Below, piece by piece: positions 6,687-40,068 of a stretch of 40,068 nt of DNA. The DNA lies in contig PDIP01000091.1 in assembly GCA_002811645.1 (NCBI GenBank), positions 1 to 40,068 of the forward strand, read 5' to 3'. The position numbers and the translations under genes were made by a program. Each line of letters begins with the position of its first letter. Positions within the stretch are counted from its first letter, which is position 1. This stretch comes from Corallochytrium limacisporum Hawaii. Lineage: Eukaryota; Protista; Pluriformea. The notes under the pieces were generated by a model that had not been told where the DNA came from, made no database searches, and saw nothing but the letters and a program-made list of their open reading frames with translations.

Positions 6687-6769
6687 CGAGAGGAGGGAGA
6701 TTCGAACTCCCGATGGTGTTACCCAACCCTTAGAAGGGGTTCGCAATAAGCCAACTATGCGATCCTCTC
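6687..6769 (-). tRNA. trnS: tRNA-Ser(UCU): serine-type body with an AGA/AGG-reading anticodon
   Basis: Anticodon arm AACCC-CTTCTAA-GGGTT, long variable arm and G73 discriminator. Closely similar to trnS(GCU) at 19091-19173. Confidence 0.92.
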
Positions 6770-7735: not shown

Positions 7736-8479
7736 TTATTCTTCGAATTGTGCAGTTACTCAAGCAATATAGTCATTAACTTTAGCTGCTTCAATAACAA
7801 TAGGCATACCAGAGTGTTCAACTCCACATAATTCATAACATGCTCCAGCTAGTAGAGTAGGTCGTTTAACTAAGAATGATGATTGGTTAAGTCGTCCTGG
7901 AATGGCATCAATTTTAACTCCTAAAGAAGGAACAGATCATGCATGTAATACATCAGCAGATCCAACAATCATTCGGATATGTGTATTAACAGGAACTACA
8001 ACTCGGTTATCAACTTCGATCATTCGTAGATCAGAGTCTTCTAAGTCATCTTCTGCTACCATATATGAATCGAATTCAAGTCCTTCTCCGTCTTCATTAA
8101 AATAATCAGAGTATTCGTATGATCAGTATCATTGGTGTCCTACAGCTTTAATAGTGATAATAGGTGTAATACATTCATCCATAAGATATAAAAGTTTGAA
8201 TCTTGGGAATGCAATAGCAACTAGAACTAAAGCTGGAGAAATTGTTCAAATAACCTCGATAAGTGATCCGTGTGTCATATGTTTTTCTGAATAAACTTTA
8301 TTAGTATTATTATACTTGATAATAATTCGCATCATTACTCAGAATACTAATGTAACAATACCAACAAGGTAAAACATAATTTGGTCGTGTAAAGATAAGA
8401 TTTCTTCCGCAATAGGTCTGGCTGGATTTTGGAATCCTAGCGCTCATGGTGTTGGGATATCAAATAAAAAATTAAGCAT
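7736..8479 (-). CDS. cox2: Cytochrome c oxidase subunit 2 (247 aa)
   Basis: [36 protein letters not shown] and CuA motif [12 protein letters not shown]. Confidence 0.98.
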
Positions 8480-8576: not shown

Positions 8577-8606
8577 ATATAATAGATAAGATATTATCTA
8601 TTATAT
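8577..8606 (-). terminator. Perfect 13-bp hairpin downstream of cox1
   Basis: ATATAATAGATAA-GATA-TTATCTATTATAT, about 15 nt past the cox1 stop. A processing or stability role is inferred. Confidence 0.5.
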
Positions 8607-8621
8607 GTATATATGTATATA

Positions 8622-10283
<1,662 letters not shown>

Positions 10284-10475: not shown

Positions 10476-10718
<243 letters not shown>

Positions 10719-10750: not shown

Positions 10751-12817
10751 TTAGGTTTTATTCCTGTTTTTTAGTAAAATTCATAACTTGGTTTCCCAAA
10801 GTAATTCAGTTTTTAGTTTTATTAAAAGAGAGTTTTCTGTATTTTTCCTAGTTTTTTCTAATCTTTTAATATACTCTCCTTTTTTAATAATAAAATTCTT
10901 TAGCTGATTTAATTTTGTATCATTTACTATAATTTTATTTCTTATAGCTAAAGGTAAATTATAGTTATAAATATTTGATTTTGTTACTTTATTATCTATA
11001 ATTGGGTTAAATTGATAATCTTCAACAAGTTTTAATTTGATGTAAATTTGTGAGTTTTTGATATAATAAATTCGAACTATGTTTCATGCAGTAAAATTAT
11101 TACTATAGTTAAGTTTTATAGTATGTAACAATTCTTTATAAAAAGTTGAATTTAATCTATCAGCATAATTAAAAGGAATATCATATTTTTTTAATTTTAG
11201 ATTTTTCAAGTTCTGGAAATCTAGCCTAATAATAGCTGTAACAGGGTAATTAGTATCTACTCTGTATACGTTTATTGTCAGCCCATTAAAGTTAATTTTT
11301 AAGGGCGTATTAAAATAATGTTTTTGTTTTTCAATAAAAGGTTTATCTAAATTATCATTAGAATAAACAGATTCTAATAAATTAATAAATAAATTTGATT
11401 TACCAATTTCTGTTGTAAAAGGATGTACTTTATCTATATATAGTTGGTAAAAATCAGTTGGTAAACTAAATTGGTTTAAATAATTTTCTTTATTCATACC
11501 AAATTTTTTAAGCATTAGATTTTTTTTAATTAGTAATCTATCTGCTTTTTCATTTAGGGCTATATTGATGATTTGATTAATTTTATCAGTATTTAATTTT
11601 ATTTTTTTTAAAGCCTTATTTAGGCGTTTATATTTATAATTGATTAATTTTCTATCATAGCTATATAAGGTATGATAAATATTGAATTTTTCAGAAGCAT
11701 TTTTTTTCAAATAGTGACCTTGGCTGAGTTCCCAAAAATCTGTTTTTACCTTTAAATCATATTCTGCCCCAGATCATTTAAAATCAATTAATTCTTGGTT
11801 TAATGGCCTAAAATGGACATCATGAATTCTTTTAGGTACAAAAACTCGATGAAATTTATGATTTTTTTTATAGCGGTGCAATTTAACTGGACGTAATGGG
11901 TAATCCCTTGAAGTGGAATCATAAATAGACTGAAGTAAACTCGATTTAGAATTAATTCTAGCAGGAGAATAATATCTGTCAAATCATTTTATAAAAGGAT
12001 TATATTTATAAGAGTCAGTATTTGAATCAGTTTTTGCCTTGTGATCAATAAAGAAATTTCTTTTTCGAAATCTATCATAGATAGGGAGCATACCAGAATG
12101 TAAATATCTTATTTTTTCTAATTTATGAATATTAAATGAAGAAGTTTTAAAAAATGGAAGTTGTTTATATAAAATATTTTTAAATAGTAGATTATAATTA
12201 TTTTTAGAGTATTTAGAATTTTTATACAGTTTATTGTTAATTTCATCTAAAACGGCTATTAATTGATTTTTATACTGAAGTTTAAAATATTTATAAATAG
12301 ATCATTTGTTATCAAATACCTGATTTTTATTATTAATATTAAAAAGAGTAATATTGAAAATAGGTCTATTAATAAGTTTAGTTCCTCGATTACGTTTATT
12401 TAAAAATTTACGCTTTCTATATTGTTTAGAATATTCAAGTTTATAATTTGGATTATCTTTTTCATCAAGATGTAATAGATCTAAATTTTGTGGTTTAGCA
12501 AAGCTTGCTTTAACACTTTTTTTAAATCTTCAAAAAGTAGCTAAATTATGTCCAGGTGTAATTGAAAAGAAAATAGTACCTTTATTACGTTCTAATAGCT
12601 GGAATGGTTTTTTAGTATATAAAATATTTTTATTTAAAACAGTAAGTACCATTTCCGGTGATTTTTGTAAAAAGACGGAATTTATTTGTCTTAAAAGAAT
12701 AAAAGGGTTTTCAACATATGTAAGAGTATCAACATCATTTGAATAACCTGTAATTCTATTAATAATAGATTGTAACGATTTAGCGTTTTTATCTTTAGAA
12801 TATTGTTGTGAAAGCAT
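10751..12817 (-). CDS. Basic ORF688; possibly a highly expanded ribosomal protein (weakly uS2-like N-terminus)
   Basis: Single open frame with TGA=W, ATG 12817 to TAA 10751, rich in K and N. VLNKNILYTKKPFQLLESNKGTIFF is only loosely like uS2. Confidence 0.75.
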
Positions 12818-12820
12818 ATA

Positions 12821-12891
12821 GTGCAAGAGCTGGAGTCGAACCAACATACAAGCGTGATGAGCGCTCTGGTTTACCATTAACCTATCCTGCA
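12821..12891 (-). tRNA. trnM: tRNA-Met(CAU), possibly the initiator
   Basis: Anticodon arm GAGCG-CTCATCA-CGCTT; acceptor TGCAGGA/TCTTGCA. Confidence 0.85.
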
Positions 12892-13109: not shown

Positions 13110-14084
13110 CTATGAAAAATATAAAGATAAAGCTGAAATAAAAGCAAGGTAAGATAATGAAAGAGGCAAGAAAGCCTGTCAACAAAGCTTCATTAATTGG
13201 TCATACCGATATCGTGGCAATGTTCCTCGCATTAATACAAATCAGAATCCAACTAGAACAACTTTAAGACCCATCCAAAATTGTGGTGGAATAAAGGTGA
13301 ATGGAATTAATGGGATAGGTGGTAATCATCCTCCCAGAAATAGAACAGTAATAATAGTAGACATTAAAATAATGTGTCTATATTCACATAAGAAAAACAT
13401 TGTGAACATTGCAGCTCTATATTCAGTATTATAACCTCTAACTAATTCAGATTCTGATTCAGTTAGATCAAATGGGACCCGAGCAGTTTCTGCAAGCGCT
13501 CTAACTGAAAACATGAATAAAGAAGGTCATAGTGGAATAGCAAAAATAATATAATTTTGTGCTAAGACAATTTCTGTTAAATTTAACGATCCAACAATAA
13601 TTAAAACTGTCATTAAAATAAGTCCAATAGAAACTTCATAGCTAATCATTTGTGCAGTGGATCGTAATGATCCTAAGAATGCATATTTTCTATTAGATGC
13701 TCATCCTGCAATAAGAACAGAATAAACGCTTAATGAACTAACAGCAAAAATATACATTAGACCAATATTAATATCTGAAACAATACTACCTGGAGAAAAT
13801 GGAATAACTGCTCATCCAATAAGTCCAAATAATAATGAAATTAAAGATCCAATGACAAACAAAATAACATTAGAGTGTCTAGGAATAATAGATTCTTTGG
13901 CAAGAAGTTTTAGAGCATCAGCAAATGGTTGTAAAAGGCCATAGGGACCAACCGCTTCAGGACCTTCACGTAACATAACAGCAGCTAAAATCTTCCGTTC
14001 AAATAAAGTAAAAAATGCAACTGCAATCAACACAGGTAAAATTATAATTAGTACTTCACTAAATTGTAAAAGAATATATAACAT
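13110..14084 (-). CDS. nad1: NADH dehydrogenase subunit 1 (324 aa)
   Basis: [29 protein letters not shown] and [12 protein letters not shown] stop. Confidence 0.98.
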
Positions 14085-14107: not shown

Positions 14108-14548
14108 TTAAAAATTTCGTAGGGCAATACGTGGAACACCATATTTAGATCGTTGTGTTTTTCGAACTAGTGTTTTAAAATCTCATTTACCACGAATAGC
14201 TTTTAAACGAATTCCCCGTAAGTCATTAACTCGTCCACCTCGTACAAGTACAAAAGTATTTTCTGTAACGACTGGTTTTTCTCCGGGTAAGGCAACAGTA
14301 GCAATAGTACGAGTACTTAGTCGAACTCGAGCTACTTTTCGTCGGGCTCTATTTGGTTTAACGGGTGCTTTAATCATCATATTGATAATTTTAGCTCGTT
14401 TCTGAGGAGCTCCTTTTAGTAGTTTTACGTATCGTAATTTTATAATTTTTGGTTTTGTTCGATAGTGAGGAATAGTATGAGAACTTCCTCCTGTGAAGTA
14501 TTCTTTATTTATAAAACGATTATTTATCAATCTAAAGCGCCTTTTCAT
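14108..14548 (-). CDS. rps12: Ribosomal protein uS12 (start uncertain; the first ATG overlaps the nad3 3' end)
   Basis: LKGAPQKRA, PVKPNSARRKVARVRLS, VLVRGGRVNDL and QRSKYGV. Confidence 0.95.
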
Positions 14549-15301: not shown

Positions 15302-16806
15302 TAAATATTTATAATATAAACACCAGATTCTTGGGCTAAAGTTAGTCAGAATCTTGGAACTAAAAATACAAATGTTGTTAAATATACGATTGATGCTATT
15401 ACTCAATCTTTATTATTATATAATAATCCGTTTGATCTTAAGATATTTTCTCACGCAAAGTAAGGTAAAACTGTTTTATCTTCAAAATGAATTAATCGAA
15501 TTAATCGCAAATAATAACTCATTGAAATAGCTGATAATAATAGGACAACAGTAGCTAATAAGTAATAATGTCTTTCAATAATTTGATATACAACTACAGC
15601 TTTAGAAGCGAATCCAATTAGTGGTGGTACTCCACCAAGAGAGAATAAAATAATTGTAAATGAATACGCTAATGATGGGTTTCTTCGTGTAAGTTGTGTT
15701 AATTCTGAAATTAATACTGTTTTTTGTCCTGTTAATTTTCGTTGTTGAGATAAAATAAAAGCAAAGCTTCCCACTGTAGTTAACATATAGAAAGTCATAT
15801 ATAGTACTCAACCTGATAGATCTGTTCCAGATAATAGTGGAAGTAAAAGGAATCCTACGTGGCTAATTCTTCTATAAGCCATTAATCGTTTAAGTTTTGA
15901 TTGCCGGAATGCACCTAATGATCCTAATGCAATAGATGATACACTAACACCAATTAACAATGGTTGTCAGATAAAATTAGTATCATAAAAAGGTAAAGAT
16001 AAGAATTGGTTTAAAACAAATAAATAAGCAATTTTTGGAACTACTGAAAGATATGCAGTAACAATAGTTAATGCTCCATCATAAATATCTACAATTGCTC
16101 AATGAAATGGTGCAGCTCCCATTTTAATAAAAAATGAAATAGAAAATGCAATAATTGCAATTCTTGAGCTTGTAGAATCTACGTAGAATAATCTTCTATT
16201 TGGGTTAGTTGGCATAAATGTACTCAATTCACCTAAATCTAAACCACCTGTCATTCCATATCATAACGACATAGCAAATAATAAGAAGGCAGATGAAATT
16301 GCCCCTACTAAAAAATATTTAAGTCCAGATTCAGTTTGTGCTGTCATCTGATCATTATCTAGTTTTCGAGGTCCTGCTGCCATAATATAAGCTGCCAATG
16401 AAAACCATTCTACAGTTAAATATACTGCCATTAAATGGTAACTCATTAAAAGGAATAATAATCCTAATCTTCCTAATAAAAATAATCATGGGTATTCATA
16501 GTTAACTACTTCGTCATTAACTCAATCTGAAATAGCAAAAACTAAAATTGTTCCTACAACAATTAAAACTTTATTAATCATAATTGAATCATTAACTCAA
16601 AGTAAACTGTTTAAATAAATACCTTCTGTAAATCTATCATTAGATAAATAAAATCAAAATAGTAAAGTCATAATTGAAAGCTTTACCATTCTGTCAATTA
16701 ATCTAAATCTTTTAAATTGTTCTTTTCAGATACCTAGACATAAGAGAAAAAAAATCGCCTCTAGTACAAAAGTTTCAGAAGTAAATACAACTCATAATAT
16801 CTGTAT
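15301..16806 (-). CDS. nad2: NADH dehydrogenase subunit 2 (non-ATG start, approximate)
   Basis: ESGLKYFLVGA, KMGAAPFHW, KRLMAYSSISHVG and FSLGGVPPLIGF. Confidence 0.95.
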
Positions 16807-16903: not shown

Positions 16904-17610
16904 TATATTTCTTTGTAGATTCAGTATAAAATTTTATGCTGAATAATAAATAATTGATAAATCAAAATTACAAATCTTGTAATTATAAATGTAAATAATA
17001 AATCTGGAGGTGTAATTGTTGAAACAATTAAGTAAATCCTTAAATAAAGCAAAAATTGATTTTTATTAAATGAATTAAAATTACTATCGCTTATTAGGAA
17101 ATGCAATAATTGTAAAATCATTACTGTAAAAATAATTAATCAATTTGTACCAATTAAAACAGGTAAATATTGGTCTAAAGTTGGTAAAAATAAGAAATTA
17201 TTAATTGAATTAAAAGAAATTAGAAAATTCAAAATTTGATGAAAATATAAATAATTTACAGTATTTATAAAAAAATAATATGTAAGAAAAAATAGAAAAG
17301 CTATTTTTCATTTTTTTCTAGTATTATTTTCAGCTCCAACTCCGAAATATGATGCGATACTATAATTAAAAGAAAGTAATTGTAAAAGAATTGAATAAAC
17401 CAAAAGCAGCTTAAGAAAGTAATTAAGAAATTTTAAAGGTTCATTAATTAATCTAGAAACCAATTGAGCTGGAAAGTATTGTTTAACAATAATATAAGAA
17501 AGAGTATCAGTAGAATTGAATAAAAGAAGAAATGATAAAAAAATAGCGATTAAATTAAAAACAAATAGTAATAAAATTTGTTTATTGTGATAAAAGATGT
17601 AAGTTTGCAC
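16903..17610 (-). CDS. tatC: Twin-arginine translocase subunit TatC/MttB (about 235 aa, GTG start)
   Basis: Multi-pass hydrophobic ORF with C-terminal STITPPDL (TatC I/LTPPD motif). Size fits. Confidence 0.78.
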
Positions 17611-17633
17611 TAAAAAAAGTTAAATAATAAATA

Positions 17634-17762: not shown

Positions 17763-18518
17763 TTAATGTAAGTGTAGCGAGTCACCAATATAAATAGAAG
17801 TAAGAAGTGTGAAAACATAAGCCTGAATTAAGCAGACAGCAATTTCAAGTCCAGTTAAAGCAAAAATAACTAAAATTGGTCCAAGAGCTGCAATAGCTAA
17901 CAGTGCTCCTCTTTGAATCATTGTAAATGCAAATGATCTAAGAATGGCAAATAGAAGGTGTCCAGATGTCATATTAGCAGCTAATCGAACACTTAATCTT
18001 ACTGCTCGAATACAGTAACTAATTAATTCAATTAATACTAGTAAAGGAGCTAATCCAATAGGACTTCCAGCAGGCATAAACATAGAAAAGAAATCTAATT
18101 GGTGTCGTAATAATCCAATTAATGTAACACCAATTAAAATTGATAGAGCTAATCCAAATGTAACTGCAATGTGTGCTGTTACTGTAAATACATAAGGAAT
18201 CATACCCATAAGATTTAATAGTAAAATAAAGTTAAATAAGCTGAATAAAAATGGAAAGTATTGTGTAACATGATTAGTTCGTGTTAAATCTAAAATTCCT
18301 AAGTAAATACTTTCTAATAGAGATTGTCATGGTGAAGGAACTAATAATCCATTTCCGGATGCTACTGTACCATTGTATACAGAGTAAAATAGTGCAAATA
18401 GAATAATCATCATTAACGCACTATTTGTAATAGAGATATCTCCAATAATTGGTAGATTTAAACTTAAAATTGGTAAAACTAAAAATTGGTCCATAATTGC
18501 GTATGCAGTAATATTCAT
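17763..18518 (-). CDS. atp6: ATP synthase subunit a (251 aa)
   Basis: NLMGMIPYVFTVTAH, RLAANMTSGH and LEIAVCLIQAYVF. Confidence 0.98.
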
Positions 18519-18523
18519 CTTAA

Positions 18524-18907
18524 TTATTTAGTATCAATTTTAATAAATGGAGTCATATAAACTCGAGACTTGGCTAGAAATTTTTCCACATAAAGGTGTG
18601 TGAAGTAATGTGAAAGTGGTGTTTTGTGAAGATAAATCATAGAAGGCTGGTCAACAGCTTTATCTTGGCCTGGTAATTGAGCTGAAGGCTCGATTGATAC
18701 TCTTTTAATTTCTTCAAATGGTGAGAAAACAGCTTGGTCTTTTCTTGAAGAAAGAGTTTTTTCTAATTCTGCTACCTTTTGTCGGACTCACAGAATTTCT
18801 CCAATTTGTGGTAATAAAACAGTTGAATTAAATACGTAGAAGCTAAAAAAAATAATTACTAATCAGTAAAATTGAGGCATAAAAGTCACAAAATCTAATT
18901 GTGGCAT
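18524..18907 (-). CDS. atp8: ATP synthase subunit 8 (127 aa)
   Basis: Begins MPQLDFVTFMPQFYW, has one TM segment and lies directly upstream of atp6. Confidence 0.93.
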
Positions 18908-19002
18908 CTAATTAGATCTATTAAATCATTTAGCAACTTGCCTGTGGAAAAAAGTATACTTTTAGTATCCTTGTCTATTTTTAGGAGATTTTAGGAGATT
19001 TT
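18908..19002. promoter_or_regulatory. Strand-switch spacer; candidate bidirectional promoter
   Basis: Genes diverge from this point. Contains the palindrome AAAAGTATACTTTT (18950-18963) and (TTTAGGAGAT)x~3 running into trnW. Confidence 0.6.
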
Positions 19003-19075
19003 AGGAGAATAGCTCAATCGGTAGAGCAATGGTCTTCAAAACCAGAGGTTATGGGTTCAAGTCCCGTTTCTCCTG
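19003..19075 (+). tRNA. trnW: tRNA-Trp(UCA)
   Basis: Anticodon arm TGGT-CTTCAAA-ACCA. Supports TGA=Trp. Confidence 0.95.
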
Positions 19076-19090
19076 AACTTTGGGACTTAG

Positions 19091-19173
19091 GAGGGGATCA
19101 CATAGTTGGTTATTGTGTACCCCTGCTAAGGGTAGGGCGAAAGCCTTCGAGAGTTCGAATCTCTCTCCCCTCG
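19091..19173 (+). tRNA. trnS: tRNA-Ser(GCU)
   Basis: Anticodon arm TACCC-CTGCTAA-GGGTA, long variable arm and G73. Confidence 0.95.
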
Positions 19174-19184
19174 TATAACTTTTA

Positions 19185-20174
19185 TTGATTCAACCTAAAT
19201 TAATTAATGGTAAACTTATTTGACATTATTTACCCAATAAAAGATTAAATAGTAATTTAATTAATGATCAATATAATTTAATTAAACGTAAATATTGTGA
19301 AAATAATTCTATTATAGAGATAAACACATCCAAAGATTTTGTAAAAAGTCGAAGAATAAAATTGAAAAAATATTATGATATTGTTAAAGATATAGATATT
19401 AACTTACCTCCTGTTTTTATAAAGGATACTATTATTGGTAAATATACTTTTACTCGTTATGAGCCAATTTGGAATATTTCACATTTAAAATCTATTAATA
19501 GATGAAATGATATTTCCAATTATGAATTCCTTTTAACAGTTACTTCTTTTCTACGACCATCTAAAACTCGATTTAAAAAAAGTAAGCGTGGATATCGACA
19601 TACTCCTCGCCAGATTAATAAAATTTCTAGTTTTATTGAAAGATTATCTTTACCAAAATATAAATATTTACGTATAAAAAAAAAGAACACATGGGGACGA
19701 AGACGATCTACAGGATATTTTATTCCTATAAGTTCAATTAATAAAAATATGTCCCAAAACAGATATATTACTTTACAATCAAATTCTCCCTATTTAGCAT
19801 TTGATAAATTTGGTAGTTACCGAAATAAAAGTAATTCAACTCTTCTCCATAGAATAGAACATAATTTATTTAGTATAATTTTATCTTTCAAAAGTAAAAA
19901 TTGAGAATTACCATTTTCTTTTTTAGATAAAAAAGAAAATAGAATGATAAGAGATACATATCTAATTTTAAATTATTTGCATTTTATTCAATTTGGACCT
20001 TTTTATAATTTAAAAAGAATTATAAAAGGCAAACATTCCAGCTTATTATTAAAGCACATAATAACTCGTCATTTATTTGAGAAATCTCTGTCACATTGTA
20101 ATAAAGAAATGTATTATAATTGAAAAAAATATTTTTTTAGTAAAAGTGCATTTCTAAGACAAGCTAAAAAATAA
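19185..20174 (+). CDS. Basic ORF329; candidate expanded uL14
   Basis: Open frame from TTG 19185 to TAA 20174. (M)IQ start, [10 protein letters not shown] and QFGPF occur in the order of uL14 MIQ / I.FD.NA.VL / IFGPV. Confidence 0.65.
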
Positions 20175-20478: not shown

Positions 20479-22433
20479 TGATGTATTTATTATTACTATT
20501 CTTTCCTCTTTGAAGTGCTACAGTTTCAGGTTTAGGAGGACGATGAATTGGTAGTAAAGGAGCTGCTATTTTCACAACTCTAAATTTATTTTTTACATGA
20601 TTAGTTTCTCTCCTTATTTTTTACGAGGTGGGATTCGCACAAGCTTCTACTGTTGTTGACGTTAGACGATGAATGGAAAACCAATATTTAGAAATTAATT
20701 GATCATTTTTATTTGATCCATTATCAAGTGTAATGCTATTAGTTGTTTCTTCAATTTCTATGCTAGTTCATTTATATTCTACTGAATATATGGACGGTGA
20801 TCCTCATTTTCCTCGATTTATGTCATATCTATCATTTTTCACTTTCTTCATGCTAATTTTAGTTACAGCTTCAAATTTTGTTCAATTATTTATTGGTTGA
20901 GAAGGTGTAGGAGTTGCATCTTATCTTCTTATTAGGTTCTGATTTACTCGTGTGCAGGCAACAAAATCTGCATTAAAAGCGATTTTAATGAACCGAGTGG
21001 GAGATTTGGCTATTACTTTAGCATTTATTGTAGTAGCTACAACTTTTAACTCTTTAGATTTTGCAACAGTATTTTCAACATCTCATTTAGTTGATCCATT
21101 TTATTTGGATATTATTTCCATCTTATTTTTAATTGCTGCAATGGGTAAATCAGCACAAATTGGATTACACACTTGATTACCAGATGCCATGGAAGGTCCT
21201 ACTCCAGTTTCTTCATTACTGCATAGAGCCACAATGGTTACTGCTGGTGTGTATTTACTAGTCCGAATTTCTCCTCTATTAGAGTGATCTCCAACTGGAT
21301 GAAAAGCTATTGCTATTGTTGGTGGATCTACTGCATTTTTTGCTGCTACTATTGGAGTTGCCCAATCTGACTTAAAGAAAACTATTGCTTGAAGAACTGT
21401 ATCTCAAATTGGTTATATGGTGTTAGTTACAGCATCATCTAATTATCCTGCAGCTATTTATCACTTGGCAAACCATGCTTCTTTTAAATGTTTACTATTT
21501 TTAGCTGCTGGTTCTGTTATTCATGGTATGGCTGATGAACAAGATATGCGGCGATTTGGGGGATTAATCAGATTCTTCCCAGTAACATATTCTGCAGCTT
21601 TAGCTGCTTCATTATCATTAATGGGATTCCCTTTCTTAACTGGTTTCTATTCTAAAGATTTAATCCTGGAATTAATGTATGCTGATTACAGATTGCCATC
21701 TGCATTTGCACATGTTTTAGCTATCTTAGCTGCTTTCTGAACTGCATTCTATTCATTCCGAAGATTATTCTTTACTTTTATTGTTTCTCCTAATAGTTCT
21801 CGATCTATTATTCAACATGCACACGAACCAGGATGACAAATGATGACTCCTATTGTTATTTTAGCTTTAGCATCTATTTATTTTGGTTACTTTACTAAAG
21901 ATTTATTTGTAGGATTCGGATCTCCTTTTTGAAATAATTCAGTGTTTTCTTACCATCTATCATTAGATTTCGAATTTTTACCTACTGGGATTAAATTATT
22001 ACCAGTTATTTTAACTCTTTTAGGTGCTAGATTGGCCGCTTTTGGTCTAACATTATTTTCAAAAGAATGAGTTTCTTTCCAATTATCTAATTATAAATTA
22101 TTTTTCTTTTTAGGATCTAAATGATTCTTTGATCATGTTTATAATTTCTTTATTGTTAAACCTACTCTATATTTTGGTTATACTATTACAAACCATTTAA
22201 TTGATCGTGGAGCATTAGAGTCATTTGGACCAACAGGTATCCAGAAAACTATTCATAAACTAGCTAAAAATAATGGATCTTTCCATACTGGACTGTTATT
22301 TCATTATGCATTTTTGATTTTTTCAATTGCAGTATTAATTTTATTTTTCTTTATTTATTATTCTGCAATCTCACCTGTTGAAATTCCTTTACCTTTTTTT
22401 ATCTTTTTCATTATTATTCTATTGCTTATTTAA
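20478..22433 (+). CDS. nad5: NADH dehydrogenase subunit 5 (651 aa)
   Basis: [28 protein letters not shown] and [15 protein letters not shown] overlap with nad4L. Confidence 0.98.
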
Positions 22434-22567: not shown

Positions 22568-24154
22568 TTGATTACTAAAGACCGTCCTAGTCGTTCCTCA
22601 ATTTCAGTTTATAGTAATGCAGATTTTATAATTTATAACAACCATTATTTTTATTTAATAACACGTCATTTAATTTCTAAAGTTGCTCGTTCTTTAAATA
22701 TGTTACCCGGTAAAAGATATATTTCTTCTAAAAACAATAAACATATTTTAAATGTTGAAATTGCTCTAAAGCCAGTTGCATATGATGCATATAATTATTT
22801 CTATTTTAATCGATGAACTATTTTATTTTGACAAAATTATAACAAAATTAATCGGAAAAAAACTATTTTTAAGAAAGTAATTGGATTTCGACAAAATAAA
22901 ATAATCAAGAAAATTGATGATAAAATAGCAAAATTTAATAATCTATTTTCGTTTATCTCTTTCCCGCGAAAACGAAAACGACGAAAAATTAAAAATACAG
23001 TTTTTCAAAATGGAAAACGAAAAATTGGAAAAGTATTCCGAGAAAAATATTTTAAATTTGAAAAAATCAACCACACTTTTAAAGCTAAAAAAAAGAATAA
23101 AATTAATCTTATTAAATTAAGAAGATTAGCTAAAAATCATTATATCAAAGATAATTTTACTATTCTACGAAGAATTTGAAGAACGTCAAAATCTTCAAGC
23201 CGATTAAGTTTTAATTTAATGCAAAATGGATCTAATAGGTATAAATTGCCTAAACCATATTATAAATTCTTAATTCAAGATCGAAAAAAACCATTGAAAA
23301 TAACTAATTATAATTGAAGAAAACAAAGACGATCAATAAAAATGCAATTTGCTCATTTTTGAAAAGATTATCAATTAAGAAAACAACATGATTTTAGTAA
23401 ACGTCGAACTGAACAAATGATTGGTTTAAATCAACGACCTGTTTTACAAATCTTATTATTTTATTATTATATTAATCTTATTTTTTCTCTATATAATTTA
23501 GATTTAGTACGAATTTATTGAATTAATACAGCTTCTACATCTGCTCCAATGTTTTCTCAGTTTATAACTAGAAAATTAACAAAACGAATGTCCCGAAGTG
23601 CTATTCGTATTCGGAAAGATGTTAAAGGATTAAACTCAAAAAATATGTTAATTAGTAATACTGATTTACCTCTTTGAGTATCTGATAATTCATTAATCTA
23701 CAATAATATTATGCTTTCTTTAGTTAATCATTCTACAAGGAAACAAAAATTAAAATTAAAAAATGATCATAATAATTTAAATAATTCCAATAATTTAAAT
23801 GGTAATATTGTAAAGAAAAATAGAAGTTTATTCAAAAATTTAAGAGACTTTACACGTTCACCATATTTAATAAATATTAATTATTTAGACAATGATAAAA
23901 ATACTACTGTTTCTGAACAATTAAAATCGTTTGATAAACTAAGTTTAAATCTTTCTCAAAAAGTTATTCCATTCACAAATAGATATTATGATGTTTATTT
24001 GAAGGGTAAATTAAGAAAAAGACTTCGAAAACGATCGTTATTTATGATTCATGGTTCTAACAGTCGAAACATGAAAACCAAATATTTAGAAACTATCATT
24101 TTACCGATTCGAGGGAAATATGGAACTCGATCATTAAAAATTGCAATTTCATAA
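22568..24154 (+). CDS. rps3: Ribosomal protein uS3, expanded (about 528 aa, TTG start)
   Basis: Single frame with TGA=W. SAPMFSQFITSKLTKR and C-terminal LKGKL...GKYGTRSLKIAIS match the uS3 C-domain. Confidence 0.78.
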
Positions 24155-24166
24155 TAATGATTATAA

Positions 24167-24238
24167 TAGTGCCAGTAGGACTTGAACCTACATTCTTGCG
24201 TTATGAGCACAATGTTCTAACCATTAAACTATGGCACT
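24167..24238 (-). tRNA. tRNA with CAU anticodon: elongator Met or lysidine-type Ile
   Basis: Anticodon arm TTGTG-CTCATAA-CGCAA. D-arm is nearly identical to that of trnI(GAU). Confidence 0.88.
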
Positions 24239-25809: not shown

Positions 25810-25893
25810 GTTAGGTTACCCAAGTGGTTACGGGGCTTGTTTTGAAAGCAGGTATGGTTTTTCCATGCGGAGGTTCGAATCCTTCACCTAACG
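25810..25893 (+). tRNA. trnS: tRNA-Ser(UGA)
   Basis: Anticodon arm CTTGT-TTTGAAA-GCAGG with a long variable arm. Confidence 0.93.
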
Positions 25894-26147: not shown

Positions 26148-29100
26148 ATGGAATCATTATTCTTTCTTATTCAATATATCAACATTGGAGTTTTATATTT
26201 AGTATTTGCACTATTTAGAAACAATTTTGTTTCTAAATATCGAAGCGAGGACCACTCTCTTCAAACAATTAACGAAAACGATTTAAGCCCGTTTCATTCA
26301 TATAATCTTTGTCATAGAGGTAGATATCCCTCACTTAAAGCAGATAAGTCATTTATTTTTCTGGATTCTAATCAAGGATCGAGATATGCTTTGAAAAATA
26401 ATAGAAATTCATTTACTATTTTTTCACAATCTAAAAGATATTCTACTCAATCTTCTAGTAAAAAATTTAATAAATCTAATCTTAAACGATCACGAACCGG
26501 ATTAAAAACAATTAAAGAGCATTTTATTTTTGAACAGAAAATAAAAATAGATAAACAGTTAAATAAAATTCATGCTAATAAAAAATATTATTTAGAAGAT
26601 AATATAATTGGTAAAAAATTAATGTTACAAAAACAATGAAATGATACAATTTTAGAACGTAGTAAAGATCATCATTTTTTACTGGAATCATTTTTAAAAA
26701 CTCGATATCGAAAAGATATTGAAGATATCAATATCAAGTTAATTTATATGCTTATGGAAGAAATTATTAAGGGCCCTGGAGCTATTCTTTCTTCTAAAGA
26801 ATTTAAACTTAATTATTGAGTAAAAAGATCAGTTTTTCCTTATTCATATTTTGGCTATGATCCAATTATTGGACGTGCTGAAGACGAAGGTGATGTTAGT
26901 ATTCCGGCTGATCGAACACATAATGCATTTATTGGACAAAACCTTGACTTCCCTCATCGGCATAAATTGGTTTCTTACCATACCTGAACTAATTATTACT
27001 TTGGTAAATTTCTAGGTATTGACGAAGCTAGCACTGTTGATTTAATAGTAACGATGTATAGTACCAACCGTAAACAACTTACATTCATTTTTGAATTTTT
27101 AGATACAATTTTATTCAATTTAACAAGTTTGCCTAATTATCCTACAGTTGCTATTCCTGTGGAAGATTTAGAAACAGTATTAAAAAAAACATTGGAAAAT
27201 CAAAAAAGGATGGATCCAAGAGATAAAGATTTTTACAAACCTGATATGATTAAATCTATTCTAAATACTTTCCGATTACTTCATAATCAAACTCCAGTAT
27301 ATAAAGATGAATTTGATGATGATAAAAACCCAGTAACTATCTTATATCCTGTTGTCAATATGTTGCAGACATTAATTCTTTTCTTAGATGCATCTGGTAA
27401 AATTAAATTAAATGATATTTACTTACCTTATTCACCCGATTTTCCCCAAAGAAATAAAGGCAATTATTCAATTAAAGATGGAGATAAAAATTATTTACAG
27501 TTTTCTTTTTTATTGATTTTAGGTTATTTAATGTTTTCTAATTGGGGTCCTATTTGAATTCATGCACAATATTTTAAATTATTTACAGATAATTTTTTAG
27601 CTTTAAATATGGATTCAAACAGATTTCATCGTCATAATCATAAGCCGCTATATATTCAAAGAAATAGTGCAGACGTAGTTAAAAACTTACAAAGAAATAA
27701 AAATAATTCTATGCCTCGGGTTGGAATTGTAACCCAGCGAAACTTTTATAATTCCGTGCTTAAACTATCTAATTTAAACTCCGGCAATTTTCATTATTTT
27801 ATTCTTGAAATGCTCTGTCAACAATTTAATGATGATTTTTTATACTTCCAACATTTTGATAAAAACCAAGAACTAGCAATAACTAGTTTTATTATCATAA
27901 GATCTGGTATTTATCGAATTAATATTTTAATTAAGGCGTATCGATCATCATACTACGACTCTTTAGACAAGGTAGGTTATTCAGGTGATTATTCTGGATC
28001 AAAATTAATTGAAGTTACCTTTACAATTAAAGGACCAGCATCAAGATCAGAATCACAGTCAGCAAAATTTGTAACTCAACTTTGAAATGAAGATGAATTT
28101 TTTTATATAATGGGAAACCTTGAAACTTCATTTATTAGCGGAGGATTATTAAAATATTTATTATATTTTAATCATTTTGTAAGTTACAAAGAAAGATTAA
28201 ATGATATTGGAACTGTTGCTTTCCAGGCAAAGCCAGAAAAGCTATGTAAACCTTATTTAACTTTAACTGGAGAAGTAAAAGATTATGTTAATGAACAATA
28301 TAATATTGAACCGGCATCTCGTGATAAAGATATGTATGATTTTTTAAAAAGTTATTTCCCTGAATTTACAAATAAATCTTTTAAAATTGTTTCATTTTCA
28401 ACACACATAAATTATCATAATGTTAAAGTTCATCCTGCTCAATGAAAAGACCGAGAAATTATTAGTCATGCATTATTTAACTCACCTATAACTGAAATTT
28501 ATTCTCTTATGGAAGCTGCAGGACTTGCTAACAATTTTCCTACTCCAGATGAGAAAAAATTAATTTCTATTGATAAAACCTTTCCACTTCACCCTATTAA
28601 TTTCATTCACTTATTACCTGAAAATAATATCTTTATAGAGGAAGATTTAAAGATAGGAAATAGTTTATATGACCCAGAAAGCCTATTATATAATCACTCT
28701 AATTTGCGTGATTCTCATTCTGAATTTTTCAATTTTCAGTTTGGACCCAATAGCAATCCTGAGTTTTCACCGTTATTTAACCCTAATCTTCATACTAATG
28801 ATATTAACATTGGAAGTTTTTTTCTTAATTCTAATACTAATCCTAAAGAATTTTTTATTTTTAAAGATAAATTAGACCGAGACTTTACTGAATTGATTAT
28901 TGAAATTAATAATAAAACTGGTAATATTTATTTACCTACAAAAGGTGAATCTACCCAAAAATTCAATATTAATATTCAGTATCACTCTATCTACCCAATT
29001 CTTTATTCTATTCATTTTCCACATCGATTTAACTGATTTTTTAGTAAAGATAGAATTAAAGGATTATTAAAAAATTATAATATTTCAAGGAAATTAATTG

Positions 29101-30254
29101 ATGATAATCCTATTATAATTGATATTTTTTTATCTATTTATTTAATAGGATTAAAAGGCAATCTAAGTTTTATAATGCATCTTTGATTAGATAACATAAA
29201 ATATCTTAGACCTGGTGTCTTATCTGAATTAGACTTATCTAAAAAATATGGTAATGATTTACCAGTTCTGCGACTTCATGTACGTGATATTGTAAAAAAC
29301 AAAAAAATTATTAAAGATTTTAATAGATCTGACATTAATGATGTTAAAAAAGCAATTAAAATGCTTTCTAAACCAAATTATTCTTATAAAGCAAAAAATA
29401 ATCATGAATTAGCAAGTATAAACAATATTTTTACAAATGTTACAACTACTAATAAGACCGCACCTGAATTGGTTCTTCCAATTTTACCTGTTAATTTAGC
29501 TTTTCCTATTATTAAGGAATATCGAGATTTATCTACTACTTATAAATCAAAACAACCTGAAATTTTTAATCCATTAGGTATTACCTCTGTTAAAAAAGAT
29601 GAGAAAAAACTACCCTGAAACATTGAAGAGAAAAGACTTTTACCTGTTTCATTAATTTCTTCTCTTGCTAAAACTTTTGATGATAAACCAATGCGAAATA
29701 AGTTTGTAGGATCAGGATTATTTTTTTCCTTGACTACTTACCACACTTGATTAAATAATAATCTTAAACCAGCCCAAAAAGCTAAATCTATTTTAGAATC
29801 TCAATTAGAAGATATCCATAAAGGTAAAAAAATTATAATTAATGATTACCTGGAAAATAAATGATTATTTTATGCTGATCAAGTTACACCTACTAAATTT
29901 CGATCTGATATTTTTAAGAATCATTCTAAAACATGTTATGATTCACAAAATATTTTATTCTCTTACGCCAATGTTATTGAATATTTTCGAAAAGATTGAA
30001 TTAATTATCAATTAATTACTAATTCAGTTAATAAGAAAATGAAAAATAAAAAAGTATATTTTAATATAAATTTGACTGAACTTGAAGACTATTTATCTAA
30101 ACAACTAAGCAGAAAGAACCTTGATTCTGAAAAAACTGCTAAAGATAAACAAGTAAATAAAATAGGTGGGCTAAAAAATACTTATGCTGAAACTTCAATT
30201 AGACATTCAAATTATAAAAAAAATAAACAAAAGAATGATAAATTTATAGTTTAA
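26148..30254 (+). CDS. Unidentified ORF1368
   Basis: Seven track ORFs share one frame and are separated only by TGA. No in-frame TAA or TAG over 4107 nt. Flanked by trnK and trnI. Confidence 0.88.
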
Positions 30255-30455: not shown

Positions 30456-33400
30456 ATGAAATTTATTCTTGAATTTTATACAAAAATGCTTGACTCCTTT
30501 AAGGAAGGTAATCTTTTTTCTCTTATGTCTAGGTATCTGAAAAGAAAATATAATTTCAAAAAATTCGAATCTCACACTTCGGCATTTTTTGAAAAGGCTA
30601 CTGATGACTCTCAAAATTGAGTATCATTAAAAGAAGTTTATAGAGAATGAGTACCTTTTACACATTCTACTTCTAGAGTTGTAGATTTCTTTTATCCTAA
30701 GCCATCTACTTATTGAAATATAGCCAATTTATCAAAATATCTAGAGAGTAAAACAAATAAAAAGTTATGAATTTATTATGTGACAAAAGTTGTTATTTCA
30801 GGTGGTACACATAAAGGAAGAATTATTTTCTACTTTCATAATTTCGATAGACGGAAAAATTGAAGCTTAACACCCTTTATTATTAAAAGACAAGATCTTT
30901 CAGGGACACCAGAATTAAAATTCGGGTATTTTAAGTCACCAACAAAGAAAATAAATAACACAGAAAAAAAGTTTCTTAGACAAATTCACTTATTTCAATC
31001 TTTAGATAATATTAAAAATTTAAATTCGTTTTTTAATCTTTTTGATAACAAACTTCAACTTATTAACATTGTTGCTTACAGTAATACAATAAATGACCTA
31101 TATCCAATCTTTTCAACTTATTTACCAGTGTTCTTAAATCAAATAAATAAATTTACTAAATTTTTTTTATTTGATTACATTTTAGAAAAAAAAGGAGATG
31201 TAAGTTTTCTGTTCAGTAATTTAGACTTTACTGAAACAGCTACTCCAAATCCTTTACTAAATTTCAATTCTGATAAAGATACAATTTATATCTTAGATTC
31301 CGTTTCTCCTAGATACAAAGGACTTTCAATCGATGTATTTCATTTTATTTTTGACCACCAATCTTATTTAAGAATTAAAAATGAATGAGATAAAATTGTT
31401 AAACGAAGCCACATTGTATCATTTCTATTAAGGGGTAAATACGTAAAATACAAACTTTTATTCAAAAACCCACCTATGTTAACTAAATATATTTTATTAT
31501 CACCCAACTCTAATAATTTTTCTTTCCCTATTACATTTTTATTTTTTTCAATTTTTATTTTGCCAAAGTATAAAGAATTTAAATCGAAATATGAACTAGA
31601 TAAAAATTTATATAGTATTCATTCTAAACGATTTAATAATACCACAATCCAGCTTCAAAATAATCAAACATTTCTGCGAGACTTTGAAACTATTATTGCC
31701 TCACTAAAAAGTAGCAAAATAGAAGAAATTATTAATAAATCAATGCCATTTTCAACTATCCATGTCAGAAAATTACATGAAACTTTATTTAATAATACAA
31801 CTAATAAAAAATACCCAGATCCTAACGACCTTTATATTTTTTATTCATTCTGAACATCTTTAAGCGTAGGACAAATAAAAATAGCACCCAACACTTATTT
31901 TGAAATTGGATCATACCCAACGGCAAAAAATGATAAAATTTATAAATATGATATTAATTCTTTTTATCCATTCTTATTAGTTTTTTTTAAATACCCCTTT
32001 GTATCTAAATTTCAATATTCTGCCACTAATTATGAAAGGAGGACTTTTATTCAATTTTTATCGACTCTTAAAGATTCTAAATTAAATAACATGTTCGGCT
32101 ATTACTTAGTAACTAACCTTAAAAAACCAAATAATTTTGAAACAAAAGTAGATTCACAATTTGATTTCCCAGGTAAAAATACTCCAAGTACAGAATCTTT
32201 TTGAATTCCATTCTCAGACTTGGTCTATATTACTAAATTAGGTTACCAATGAGAATCTAACTATCAATATTTATTTGATTACCAACCTTTTCAAAATTAC
32301 CAACTAATTTTCCAATTATATAATATGCGACAAAATAATTTTGAAAATATTTTGAATGTAAAAGCGTTACTAAATCAATTCTCCGGTCTTCTAGTTCGCT
32401 CTAGAAGTACATTAGTACCCGGAACTTCAATTAAACCTTTAACACGAATCTCTTTACCATGAGAATGAAGACGCTTATTTGATATCTCAATTGTAAAAAA
32501 CCCAAGATATTTTAATACTATTTCATTTTATTTTTGACAATACTTTATTATTGAGACACTAATAAATATTTTAAAAAATGATAAAAATGAACAAGATACT
32601 CTAAGTATTTTGAATCATGCTAAATCCACAATTGAAGACCTACTAGAACAAAATAGACGATTTGACAAAGATAATATAAATGATGACATGTTAGATTACC
32701 TATATTCAATTCTAGAAAAATGTGAAAATGAACGAATTTTAAGGAAAGATAAAGAATATTTAAACTTTAATCCAGATTTCTTTAAATACTATTACATTTC
32801 TACTCATTTACAAACTGTTATTCAATTATTATTTAGAAGAAAAAAATACTCATATCTTATTACTGATAATAATAGTCCGTTATACAATTTAAAAAAGAGA
32901 CAATCTTTTTCAGGAGTTAATCAACATTCGGATTTAAATAAATTTATTTTAAAACAATCCCCTATCTTTTTATTCCTGACAATTATTTATACAAATTGAA
33001 ATAATGTAGATCCAATAAACGCATCTGGATTCCAAATGTATTCTTATGCTCGTATCTTTTTACATCAAATTAAACGAGCCTATAGACAGCATGTTATTTA
33101 TTCAGATGTAGACTCAATTGTTTTGAATAAACCTTTAAATCCTTTATTTAAATTTGAAGAACCTTTAACTTGAATAATAAATAATAGTAAAAGCTTACAA
33201 AAACTAACTAAGTATGACACTGAAAAAGAAAATTTTTATGATAACTGAAACCAATTTAAAACTAAAGAGGTTCAAATTTTAACATGCCCTAATATGCAAC
33301 AATTAAATAGTAAACAATATATTAATATTGAATCTGATAATAAAAGATTTTCTGCTAAATTAGGAACATTTAAAAATGAAAAACTCAGAAAAAGTTGAAT

Positions 33401-33851
33401 AACTGATTATCAATATAACAATTCAAACTATAGTATTAACAAAGATTCTTTATTTTATTTTAATAGAATGCTAACTTATGGACATAAACAGTATTCTCTT
33501 TCATGAGCTTTTAAAGATAAAACACAGGTGCATACAAAATTCTCAGGCGCTAATATTGAAAACGCTGGAATTATTGACACATTCCCAGATGAATTTCAAA
33601 AATGAACAACATTCTGAAAATATGTATCTTCCAATGTAAAAAAATTAAAAATTGCTAATGGAAAGTGACAAAAGGATAAAGTAGATAAATTATTAAAAGG
33701 AATCGAAGAAAATTTCGAAAAACAAGACTTTGACCCAGAATTTGAATTAACAAATAATGGAAAATACGTCCTATCATTTAACACATATTATATAATGAAA
33801 AACTATATAATTACTATCAATTTTACACCTAATAAACTAAAAACAGATTAA
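30456..33851 (+). CDS. dpoB: Protein-primed family B DNA polymerase, divergent (1131 aa)
   Basis: One frame with motifs in the expected order: FYFHNFD (ExoII-like), YDINSFYP (motif A, 31947-31970), KALLNQFSG (motif B, 32361-32387), SYAR, YSDVDS (motif C, 33099-33116), LGTFKNE and KQY. Confidence 0.9.
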
Positions 33852-36361: not shown

Positions 36362-39300
36362 ATGATGAAATTTAAATATATTTTACATAATAGTTATCGT
36401 AATATTATTATAAAAAACTATTTTTATTACCTTACCTACAATTTACATATATCTAAACTAGCTCGTTCTTTAAAAAATCCTATAGGCTATTTTAAATATC
36501 ACAACCTTTTATCTATTTCTAAATTTTTCACTTTTCGGCCTGTATCTGTTAAAACACAGATATCACCATTACTTCGAAAAGTTTCTAAATACGGTATTAA
36601 GAAAAATAAACGATATTTAAATTACAATAATAAATCAATATCTCATGGACGGAAAAAAATTGTTAATTTTCAATTTAAAAGATTACTCTATTGAAATATG
36701 TTTCAAACAGCTCCGCTTTCTGTTGATTCAATAATTGCAAATTTCTATATTTCTCTTAATGATATAAAAAGTTATAAATATAAACAATTAGTCAATGATT
36801 TACAAAATGATAAATATACATTAAATCAGAATAATGCAATACTTTATTCAATACTATGAAATAAATACCAGTATTCTGATTTATTTCTACAAATTCATAA
36901 TTGATATGCTAAGTCTTTACAATCTAATAAATGACATGCATTTGAAAAGCTACAACATAATATTATCTCACCTCATAATTTTTATCTATTTAGAAAGATT
37001 TTTGTTTTTGTTTTAAATGCAATACCTTATGATTTAGAAACAAAACATTCTATTGTGGTGGCTAATAACTATGCTACAATTGTACTAATGAAAAAACCTA
37101 AATTTTCTGATTATTATTACAAAAATAATCAGAATGCTCTTTTAATTTTCATTTTATCATATTTTATTCATATGCATGTTTATTTAACATTAATCTTATT
37201 CTGTAAAAAAAATGAATACAAAAAAAATAAAGTTCCATTTTATAATATGCTTGAACTATTTTCTCCTGTATTCTCTAAAACAGAATTTGACTTAAAAATG
37301 TCTATCGAAGGAAAATTAATGTATAATCGCGTAAAAGACTATATTGAAAAAAATAACTATTCTTATTCTTTAACCAGATATGATCAATACTGCAATTCTA
37401 TCCAATATTGAACTATAGATAAAAGCAATGCTGATAAACAAATCACAAATAAATATTTTTCATACTTAACAATTAAAGATATGTATCAAATTTGGCCTAA
37501 AGCTTCATTTGTACCTCTTATGTTTTTCCTAGCAGTAAATGATTTTGGTCATCTAGTATCTAACATCCAAAGTGGAAACAGAACACCGGATTACATTTCA
37601 CCAGATACCAAATTACATAATATAATGATTTACCAGAGACAAATTTATGATAAAAAACCAAAACTGTCAACTGTCATTAATTTGCCAAAATTTAATCATA
37701 TCTACGATACTTTACAGCATGGCTCTAATACACTTAGAAATAATACATATATTTCTTCAATTAGAGATTACAACATACGGGAAAAATATACATTATCTAC
37801 AAATATTTATCAGTTTTCTCATTCACGATATACGTCAACACCACCCTGATTTCTGTATGGTCCCTATATAAGCCATTTATTCTCATCATCTGAAAACATA
37901 GGAGGAGAACGAGATGCAGCAAGTGAATCATATACAGCTATTAAATACCATTTATATAGTGAGCCTCAGTTTGAAGTAAATAATTGAAAGTTTCAACCAT
38001 TATTTTTCCATCTAAATACTATTATTCCCCTATTAAGATTAGAAGATACTAAACATATCTTTAATCTATTTCTAAATTCAATTCAATTATCTAAAGTTAC
38101 AATAGGGAAAGACACTAAGGGTGCAGCTTCTATCTATTTAAATTTTGATCTTAACAGACCAAGATTTAAAGAAGCCTTAGACCTACTTGTCAAATACCAA
38201 CTTCTATCAGTTGATGAAATTCAAATAATTTGACTCTCATTCTTGAAACTTTCAATGTATTGAGTAGAATATGAATTTAATTCAATACTAAAGGAACGTA
38301 ACCATTATGCAGAAGATTATGAAATTCATTATAGATATGCATCTGGGAGAAGCAATAATGATATTGAAGTTAACTCTAATTTATTTCCGGTTATTAAATA
38401 CAAACGAAGATTTGGTACAGAAACAGAAAGGTTCATAAATACAATTAATTACGATTACTCAGAGTATGAAAAAGCTTCAGTAATAGACCGACAATTAGGT
38501 ATGTGAAGAAACACTCCTTATTCACCTCTTATTCTGAATAAAATTATTAAGCACACATTTTATTCAGAATGAAACAATGATAAATATGATATTTATAAAG
38601 CTAGTTCTATTCAACCGGACATGCTTTCTAAATCCAATATAAATTATTTCATCCCATTTTTGCCAACATTACCTATCTTACCACAAAAACTAACTGGAAA
38701 TACTATTCTCTTACGAGAGAATACAAAAGCTATTCAATTACAATTCTATCTTGTAAATAAAAAATCAAATTATTTTCCTTATTTTTTGAATACTGCTTCA
38801 CAATCTCCTTTGGCTACTACTGCTTTCTTTTATTACAACCAATCTATTAATAATAAAGAAGTTTATCATCACAATATGACAGAAGATTGACACGATTTAA
38901 TTAAACGCTTTAATCGAGGAGAACTTAATTTAGCACAGTTATCTACCTTGGATTATGCATCCTGAATAACTGAGCGGGCGAAAAGAATTCCCTCACGACT
39001 TGGTATGAATCAGCTATATATTAGAACAGTAGATGGCTCAAGAGAAAACCTTAATACCTATCCAAGTAAAGCTGATGATATCTCTTCTGAAGATCTAGGC
39101 TTCGTCAAGACTTTCCGCCCTTACCTTACCACTCAAGGATGAAGATCAAGAAAAGATAATATTGATACTCTTCAAGGACTAATCAAAATCGATAATCGTT
39201 TAACAAACTACGATTTGTGAAATGACCGGTGAAGAGTAAAAGGATTTATCAAACCTGGTTATGAATTATATTACTTACATAATTATTTGATTAAACATGG

Positions 39301-39574
39301 CAAACCTATAAAAAGGAATAATGATTTAAACTATAATAGAATAAACCATTATGATAACGGACGATACATTAATAGTAGTGAATCTGAAATTAAATCATTA
39401 TTTTACAACTTTTCTTTACCTGGTAAAAAGAATCCAGATTTTACTCATAGATTAAGAAATATATTAATTAGTAAAACATGGGCCAAGCATTTTAACTTAA
39501 AATCCTTTGCCAAGTTAAAGAAAAACAAAACAACTAAAAAGCCAACAATTGATAAAACAAAACCAACACAATAA
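36362..39574 (+). CDS. Unidentified ORF1070
   Basis: Five track ORFs share one frame and are linked through TGA. No in-frame TAA or TAG over 3213 nt. Basic N- and C-termini. Confidence 0.88.
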
Positions 39575-39590
39575 CTTAAAACAATTTTAC

Positions 39591-39734
39591 AAATTCCCCC
39601 CTCCTGTGAGGCAGCATTGCTGTGAATTATTATAGTTAGATTTAGCGCTTGGGCGACTGATCCTAGATTATGACTAAAATAATTCGGTGGGCCTTTTCCC
39701 CAAGGATGGGCCCCCCTCCAGGAGGGGGGAATTT
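39591..39734. other. GC-rich multi-stem structured element at the inner edge of the right TIR
   Basis: Perfect 16-bp closing repeat AAATTCCCCCCTCCTG (39591-39606) / CAGGAGGGGGGAATTT (39719-39734) enclosing further stems. Confidence 0.7.
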
Positions 39735-40068
39735 TGTGGGTGTGTAGGAGATAGTGTGTGTGAACTTGCAGTTGAACTTGCAGTGATTCTCTTTTTTCTA
39801 TTTTCTATTTTCTATTTTTCTCACTCTTTTTTACTTTTTTTACTTTTTTTATATCTTTTTTCATTTTTACACTCTTTTTTATTACCTTTTTATTACTTTT
39901 TTATTACTTTTTTATTATTTATACTGTTTGAGGTTCATTATTTATCATTAATTATACCATATTTATCCTCTCGAACCACCTTTATCTCCCCAAATACTAC
40001 CGACCGTACACCGGTACATAATACGGTCTAACGTATTTCTCTCTTCTAACAGCTCTCTCCATACTCAC
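39730..40068. repeat. Right terminal inverted repeat / telomeric region
   Basis: 39730-39816 mirrors 1-87. The remainder is pyrimidine-rich non-coding sequence, presumed to be the part missing from the left end. Confidence 0.85.

Follow-up and report, generated by a model that had tools for sequence, protein, structure and literature searches.

Serine as the probable meaning of AGA and AGG in the mitochondrial genome of Corallochytrium limacisporum, with a UCU tRNA likely copied from trnS(GCU)

The mitochondrial genome of Corallochytrium limacisporum is predicted to read AGA, and very probably AGG, as serine, together with UGA as tryptophan, AUA as isoleucine and CGN as arginine, and its UCU decoder appears to be a copy of the genome's own trnS(GCU); code and decoder together are given a probability of about 0.88. 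Serine for AGA and the derivation of trnS(ucu) as a copy are each well supported by the sequence comparisons, and serine for AGG is likely in view of the UCU anticodon and one informative column. The reassignment itself is of a known kind, the novelty lying in the lineage and in the intact parent and daughter tRNAs. Other reassignments are known to have come about through a duplication in which both copies persist.

As donor and daughter are both intact here, the duplication of a tRNA served by an anticodon-blind synthetase is directly testable, and Corallochytrium is culturable and stably transfectable. If translated with table 4, this mtDNA would yield about 195 wrong arginines, which would distort holozoan mitochondrial trees. 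According to a review from 2016, UGA is the sole deviation in the close unicellular relatives of animals, and the reading proposed here would break this rule of a minimally modified mitochondrial code (PMC5633667). A literature search, with most subscription journals outside its reach, found no report of AGR=Ser in unicellular relatives of animals and no published description of Corallochytrium or Syssomonas mtDNA.

The mitochondrial contig

The window, which is the whole 40,068-nt contig, is the mitochondrial genome of C. limacisporum and forms one contig of a 24.1-Mb, 286-contig assembly, four nuclear proteins of which match EukProt entries with Clim_evm names, in keeping with this species. 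Two sequencing runs from 2015, guessed to be RNA, contain about 80% of the sampled words. It carries rns, rnl, 23 tRNAs, cob, cox1-3, atp6/8/9, nad1-6, nad4L, rps12 and rpl16, as well as the following features:

1-87, no strand: terminal inverted repeat, left copy, truncated by the contig end
4681-6666, minus: ORF of about 661 aa, on the same strand as the adjoining trnS(ucu)
10751-12802, 19749-20174, 26148-30254 and 36362-39574: further ORFs of about 683, 141, 1368 and 1070 aa
14873-15301, minus: rpl6 (E 1e-5, profile built from fetched loci)
16906-17619, minus: tatC (E 4e-4, profile built from fetched loci)
22700-24154, plus: rps3-like ORF of 484 aa, with a C-terminal rps3-like motif only, which the profile did not confirm
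30456-33851, plus: DNA polymerase of the B family, divergent, with one piece matching PF03175 at E 8e-6 and with recognisable motifs A and C
39730-39816, no strand: terminal inverted repeat, right copy, 87 bp with 100% identity to the left copy

The ORFs of about 661, 683, 141, 1368 and 1070 aa matched nothing in the fetched loci, nor in Pfam for the pieces tested. The first-pass annotation had spoken of a gene-rich protist mtDNA, which holds in comparison with animals only, as the content is moderately rich (rps12, rpl16, rpl6 and tatC, with rps3 as a motif only), and Corallochytrium, as a holozoan, stands near the animals and is no distant protist.

The 87-bp terminal inverted repeat points to a linear molecule, and together with the B-family polymerase it makes a linear, protein-primed mtDNA probable. 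Genes lie on the minus strand to the left of 18907-19002 and on the plus strand to its right, one CAU tRNA excepted, and this interval is a likely central divergent transcription start. Short near-exact inverted repeats (10173-10207 with 26182-26216, and 16712-16755 with 30511-30553) pair the cox1 or nad2-upstream region with the starts of two large ORFs.

Assignment of AGA and AGG

Codon meaning was measured against 152 reference loci out of metagenomes, public assemblies and genome contigs, comprising mitochondrial and bacterial homologues. Sixteen window proteins were aligned with the query AGR masked, references were translated with AGR=Arg, near-duplicates were dropped, and the analysis kept 3,869 columns, in 14 genes, that had six references or more. 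A home-made profile-likelihood test was applied to query-anchored pairwise alignments with 5000 bootstraps, and a column was termed conserved where at least 70% of references share the residue. Positions 8592-8636 were left out of the codon analyses, cox1 being cut at 8637, and codon totals rest on approximate gene bounds.

As a control, all other codons with at least five columns returned the table-4 residue (among them UGA=Trp, AUA=Ile and, at log-likelihood 204, AAA=Lys); AUA was Ile in 4534 of 5000 bootstraps and never Met, on 10 columns only. Identical scoring gives AGA=Arg in the reference loci, a few site-poor loci giving Lys, and among those with at least four sites none returned AGA=Ser. 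In contigs that carry the Capsaspora atp9, AGA falls on conserved Arg in all 3 cases.

For AGA in the window (52 columns) the log-likelihoods were +39.9 for Ser, -4.4 for Ala, -36.1 for Thr and -95.8 for Arg, with Ser winning in 4989 of 5000 bootstraps. The expectation of the first-pass annotation that AGR codons should map to Ser is thus borne out for AGA, while AGG has one informative column. That annotation had also placed AGA at conserved Ser or small-residue sites, and all the sites it named are present; they are listed below with further sites that carry the assignment.

8201-8203, minus: cox2 AGA, Ser in 37 of 37 references
9477-9479, minus: cox1 AGA in II-AGA-H, Ser in 65 of 66
9795-9797, minus: cox1 AGA in F-AGA-LHL, Ser in 57 of 71
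10527-10529, minus: atp9 AGA, the one site most in favour of Ala (118 of 120 homologues)
13689-13691, minus: nad1 AGA, Ser in 41 of 41
14348-14350, minus: rps12 AGA in KPN-AGA-A (KPNS), Ser in 16 of 16
17997-17999, minus: atp6 AGA in AV-AGA-L, Ser in 20 of 21
21393-21395, plus: nad5 AGA, Ser in 59 of 59
20934-20936, plus: nad5 AGG in YLLI-AGG-FW, N29, S24, G3 and H1, with no Arg or Lys in 57 references
nad1 AGA in ELV-AGA-G: S18 and G11 among 41
cox2 AGA in PA-AGA-P: T19, S16
nad4 AGA in YG-AGA-LTT: S18, A11

At conserved columns AGA coincides with Ser nine times, Ala four times, His, Thr and Gly once each and Arg never, and some of these are invariant Ser columns where every reference has TCN. 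The companion claim that conserved arginines use CGN agrees with 52 of 55 conserved Arg columns, AGR occurring at none. On average, AGR columns hold S 0.34, A 0.18 and T 0.10, which matches TCN columns (S 0.40, A 0.14, T 0.08), and the mean Arg frequency is 0.018 in AGR columns versus 0.664 in CGN columns. In aligned columns the references average 102 arginines; CGN alone gives 91 in the window, and CGN plus AGR would give 144. AGA is the commonest AGN codon (AGA 176, AGT 112, AGC 34, AGG 19), and CGA accounts for 142 of the 206 CGN codons. A test of AGA sites as descendants of AGY gave p=0.09.

The UCU tRNA and its parent

The tRNAs that bear on the assignment are as follows:

2022-2092, minus: trnR(ucg), CGN reader, the sole tRNA with an Arg-type body
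6687-6769, minus: trnS(ucu), candidate AGA/AGG decoder, with a UCU anticodon on a tRNA-Ser body
19003-19075, plus: trnW(uca), UGA=Trp
19091-19173, plus: trnS(gcu), predicted parent copy, AGY reader
25810-25893, plus: trnS(uga), UCN reader, 56% identical to the UCU tRNA

The gene trnS(ucu) lies between cox3 and the ORF of about 661 aa, all on the same strand, and its CCA is not encoded. It is the single UCU tRNA among the 23 of the window (ARAGORN), as had been noted, and an assembly-wide search with it found no further copy, the only matches being to trnS(GCU). The long variable arm and G73 described earlier are confirmed: the variable region has 13 nt with a 3-bp stem (14 nt in trnS(GCU)), and G73 is accompanied by G1-C72, A4-U69 (R4-Y69) and C11-G24 from the tRNA-Ser identity elements listed in PMC9976931. 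The bacterial elements G2-C71 and G30-C40 are absent, with A2-U71 and C30-G40 instead, but these are not required locally, as trnS(GCU) of the same genome lacks them too. Alanine identity is missing as well (G3-C70 and G73 rather than G3.U70 and A73), and position 20 of the D loop is C20, the A20 of tRNA-Arg being absent from trnR(UCG) too. The fold is intact (z -3.6), and Rfam RF00005 reported trnS(GCU) at 51 bits but not trnS(ucu).

The proposal that the UCU tRNA aligns throughout with trnS(GCU) is matched by 69 identical positions of 84 (82%), the next best tRNA reaching 56% and all window tRNA pairs averaging 54% (sd 6). Four canonical stem pairs differ between the copies (4-69, 10-25, 27-43 and 50-64) and all four changes are compensatory, which argues for selection on structure in both copies. 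In tRNA trees built with FastTree and IQ-TREE with the anticodon masked, trnS(ucu) was sister to trnS(GCU) and not to trnR, as predicted (UFBoot 99, SH-aLRT 91.5, FastTree 0.96), at a distance of 0.23 versus 1.6 to the next tRNA and with a long common stem, the deeper nodes being without resolution. Reference trnR(UCU) genes (71-76 nt) are 42-52% identical to trnS(ucu) and did not group with it.

Parent and daughter are thus both retained, as first suggested, and in the anticodon the daughter has U34 in place of G34. The GCU copy is taken as the parent, since GCU is the general state and trnS(GCU) keeps a GAAA-capped arm like trnS(GCU) in two reference mitochondria (L017 and L099). With 12.3 kb between the copies and opposite orientations, either the duplication was not tandem or a rearrangement followed it.

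Decoding and history

[quoted passage not shown] A putative enzyme for this step is the nuclear SerRS L164, which is closest to mammalian mitochondrial SerRS and weakly matches the N-terminal arm domain. A second nuclear SerRS-like locus (L154; G000:C185:248994-252329) has the N-terminal arm domain, no match to the catalytic domain and an N-terminus resembling cytosolic SerRS. U34 of tRNA(UCU) is probably modified, so that it would read AGA and AGG while its GCU parent reads AGY, and the genome encodes a nuclear homologue of GidA/MTO1, which acts in U34 modification. AGN is the only four-codon family with two tRNAs, the other encoded family boxes having one U34 tRNA each, and the keeping of both suggests that the UCU tRNA still reads purine-ending codons only.

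The history considered the better supported, at somewhat below two chances in three, begins with loss of trnR(UCU), after which CGN would have taken over the needed arginines and the duplicate would have captured the vacated AGR codons. An AGR-free stage is a real state, as several reference mtDNA loci have zero AGA in 500-2600 aligned codons. The same code may have had another history, possible yet clearly the less probable, in which the Ser-UCU copy came first and competed with trnR(UCU) through an ambiguous intermediate, or in which the likeness of the two tRNAs today stems from a later re-duplication or gene conversion. AGA is the common Arg codon in AT-rich references, so mutation pressure alone would not remove it, and AGA at invariant Ser positions where references have TCN needs time, yet the two tRNAs are only 0.23 apart. 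Against a gain-first order stand the AGA-free mitochondrial loci among the references, the cost of serine at conserved Arg sites, and the fact that loss first is the route argued for Sphaeropleales (PMC6551751).

The reassignment would have arisen within the Corallochytrium lineage, separately from that of bilaterians and of glass sponges. The independence from animals claimed at first reading agrees with AGA=Arg in Capsaspora, the ordinary trnR(UCU) of Sphaerothecum (PMC7027106) and the lineage-specific body of both tRNAs. AGR=Ser is weakened as a phylogenetic marker by such an independent origin next to animals. Neither the viral contigs nor the reference loci with sufficient sites yielded a relative that shares this code or tRNA.

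Alternative assignments

AGA might be serine and AGG differ, being Arg through an imported tRNA, Lys (its meaning in some arthropods and pterobranchs) or hardly decoded at all, but this is unlikely. The window has 19 AGG per about 10,100 codons; nad5 20934-20936 is the sole AGG in an informative column, the other 18 lying in poorly alignable ORFs, and there Asn (2.7) scores above Ser (1.8). However, this column contains neither of the rival residues Arg and Lys, the trnK anticodon is UUU rather than CUU, and other G-ending codons are similarly rare (TGG 9, AAG 79). A U34 tRNA normally reads AGA and AGG, which also counts against a different meaning for AGG.

It is improbable that AGR is ambiguous, with Ser and some Arg, either because ArgRS still sees C35 and U36 or because cytosolic tRNA-Arg(UCU) is imported. 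The nuclear ArgRS L157, probably the mitochondrial enzyme, is a separate, yeast-type protein that retains the YxQYxHxR segment, and tRNA import seems likely, as trnT is not encoded. Insect ArgRS rejects U36 and C32:A38 (PMC4615739), but the C32:A38 antideterminant cannot act here, as trnR(UCG) carries it too. Yet Arg is found in half of the references at no AGR column, R plus K reach at least 30% in only 2 of 53, and many AGA codons lie in hydrophobic stretches or at invariant Ser. L157 (G000:C272, protein P0125) has long insertions, and its anticodon domain shows nothing diagnostic except a C-terminal Leu where six homologues have Met.

Alanine, the only rival residue with some support, is the meaning of AGR in Marsupiomonadales and in some Sphaeropleales, but for the window it is very improbable, whether alone or mixed with Ser. 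It could explain AGA at the Ala columns of atp9 (10527-10529), nad5 (21225, 57 of 57) and cox1 (9761 and 8945), and Ala is the residue at 4 of the 16 conserved AGA columns, as compared with 8 Ala and 65 Ser columns for the remaining Ser codons (Fisher p=0.08). This excess is not significant, ordinary TCN codons also occur at Ala columns, Ser is ahead by 44 log units with the bootstrap support given above, and the tRNA combines G3-C70, G73 and a long arm without the G3.U70 and A73 of tRNA-Ala. Editing of AGA to a Ser codon in mRNA, with the UCU tRNA as a by-product or pseudogene, is scarcely credible: mRNA editing is known from the mitochondria of calcaronean sponges (PMC5633667 mentions it for non-bilaterians), but about 195 edits would be required, the matching decoder tRNA makes them unnecessary, and the compensatory changes and intact fold indicate selection on that tRNA.

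Comparison with known codes

With AGR=Ser, UGA=Trp, AUA=Ile and AAA=Lys, the code proposed for Corallochytrium equals that of glass sponges (Hexactinellida, e.g. Aphrocallistes vastus; PMC2267718), the AGG part resting on one column. Both have trnI(gau), trnR(ucg) as the sole Arg tRNA and a trnS(ucu), and A. vastus also lacks trnT (PMC2267718). However, glass sponges have only trnS(ucu), with an aberrant D arm, and trnS(uga), without a GCU copy (PMC2267718), whereas Corallochytrium has GCU and UCU tRNAs with full cloverleaves and long variable arms, a linear mtDNA and ribosomal protein genes. NCBI table 5 (invertebrate mitochondrial) shares AGR=Ser and UGA=Trp but is ruled out, as AUA is Ile and not Met, and table 9 (echinoderm/flatworm) is ruled out, as AAA is Lys and not Asn.

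Animals have a single trnS1, usually D-armless, with GCU or, in about 37% of protostomes, UCU (PMC4783518). As only this one degenerate tRNA survives, the route to AGR=Ser is hidden in animals. The anticodon loop CTTCTAA is common to trnS(ucu) and 77 eumetazoan tRNA-Ser(UCU) (PMC4615739), though it is frequent in ordinary trnR(UCU) too. There is an even chance, in our estimate, that Corallochytrium provides the first case of sense-codon reassignment among the unicellular relatives of animals and also preserves a two-tRNA stage, one that animals and glass sponges may themselves have gone through before the entire AGN box fell to a single tRNA. If true, and taken with the lone trnR(UCG), the missing trnT and the apparent lack of TilS, animal-like changes of mitochondrial translation would have arisen in parallel outside animals.

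Capsaspora, Sphaerothecum, Amoebidium, Monosiga and Ministeria share UGA=Trp, some ribosomal protein genes and, in some, tatC. Work attributed to Zihala and colleagues (2020) is said to describe AGR=Ser in the mtDNA of the stramenopile MAST8b, with ribosomal protein genes and AUA=Met; this unrelated lineage may share the two-tRNA state. The extra tRNA-Gly(UCU) of ascidians (PMC7047913; Kondow et al. 1999) reads AGR with the usual isoacceptor kept, as here, but the amino acid is Gly and the donor tRNA came from another codon box. In Sphaeropleales a tRNA(CCU) from duplicated trnA or trnM accompanies reassignment after loss of trnR(UCU) (PMC6551751, PMC6821328), a likeness in that duplication and anticodon change were partly responsible, though the outcome is Ala or Met and not Ser; predictions of Ser in that group were rejected for want of a long arm in the tRNA (PMC6551751, PMC6821328). 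The decoder of pedinophyte AGR=Ala is a remodelled trnR (PMC12574857), unlike the trnS copy proposed here.

Other features of translation and the reference loci

No trnT was found among the 23 tRNAs with ARAGORN or Rfam, the contig ends being possibly incomplete, although there are about 540 ACN codons; a second nuclear ThrRS (L161) has a presequence-like N-terminus, and import of cytosolic tRNA-Thr is likely. Two CAU tRNAs are encoded:

12821-12891, minus: second CAU tRNA
24167-24238, minus: CAU tRNA, 74% identical to trnI(gau)

AUA, with 111 codons, decodes as Ile. TilS is reported in all sampled unicellular relatives of animals (PMC4558845), and the sole PP-loop match in the present assembly is a Ctu1-type protein.

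Several reference loci have codon features of their own. L103 encodes a CCU tRNA although AGR is absent from its 2,644 aligned codons, and L003 and L102 have apparent AUA=Met. In L105 AGG is apparently Met (18 sites), as has been described for Chromochloris. Many of the loci L097-L120 carry the names of bacterial genomes but, judged by their genes and tRNAs, look mitochondrial, several with UGA=Trp, and are probable contamination of genome bins.
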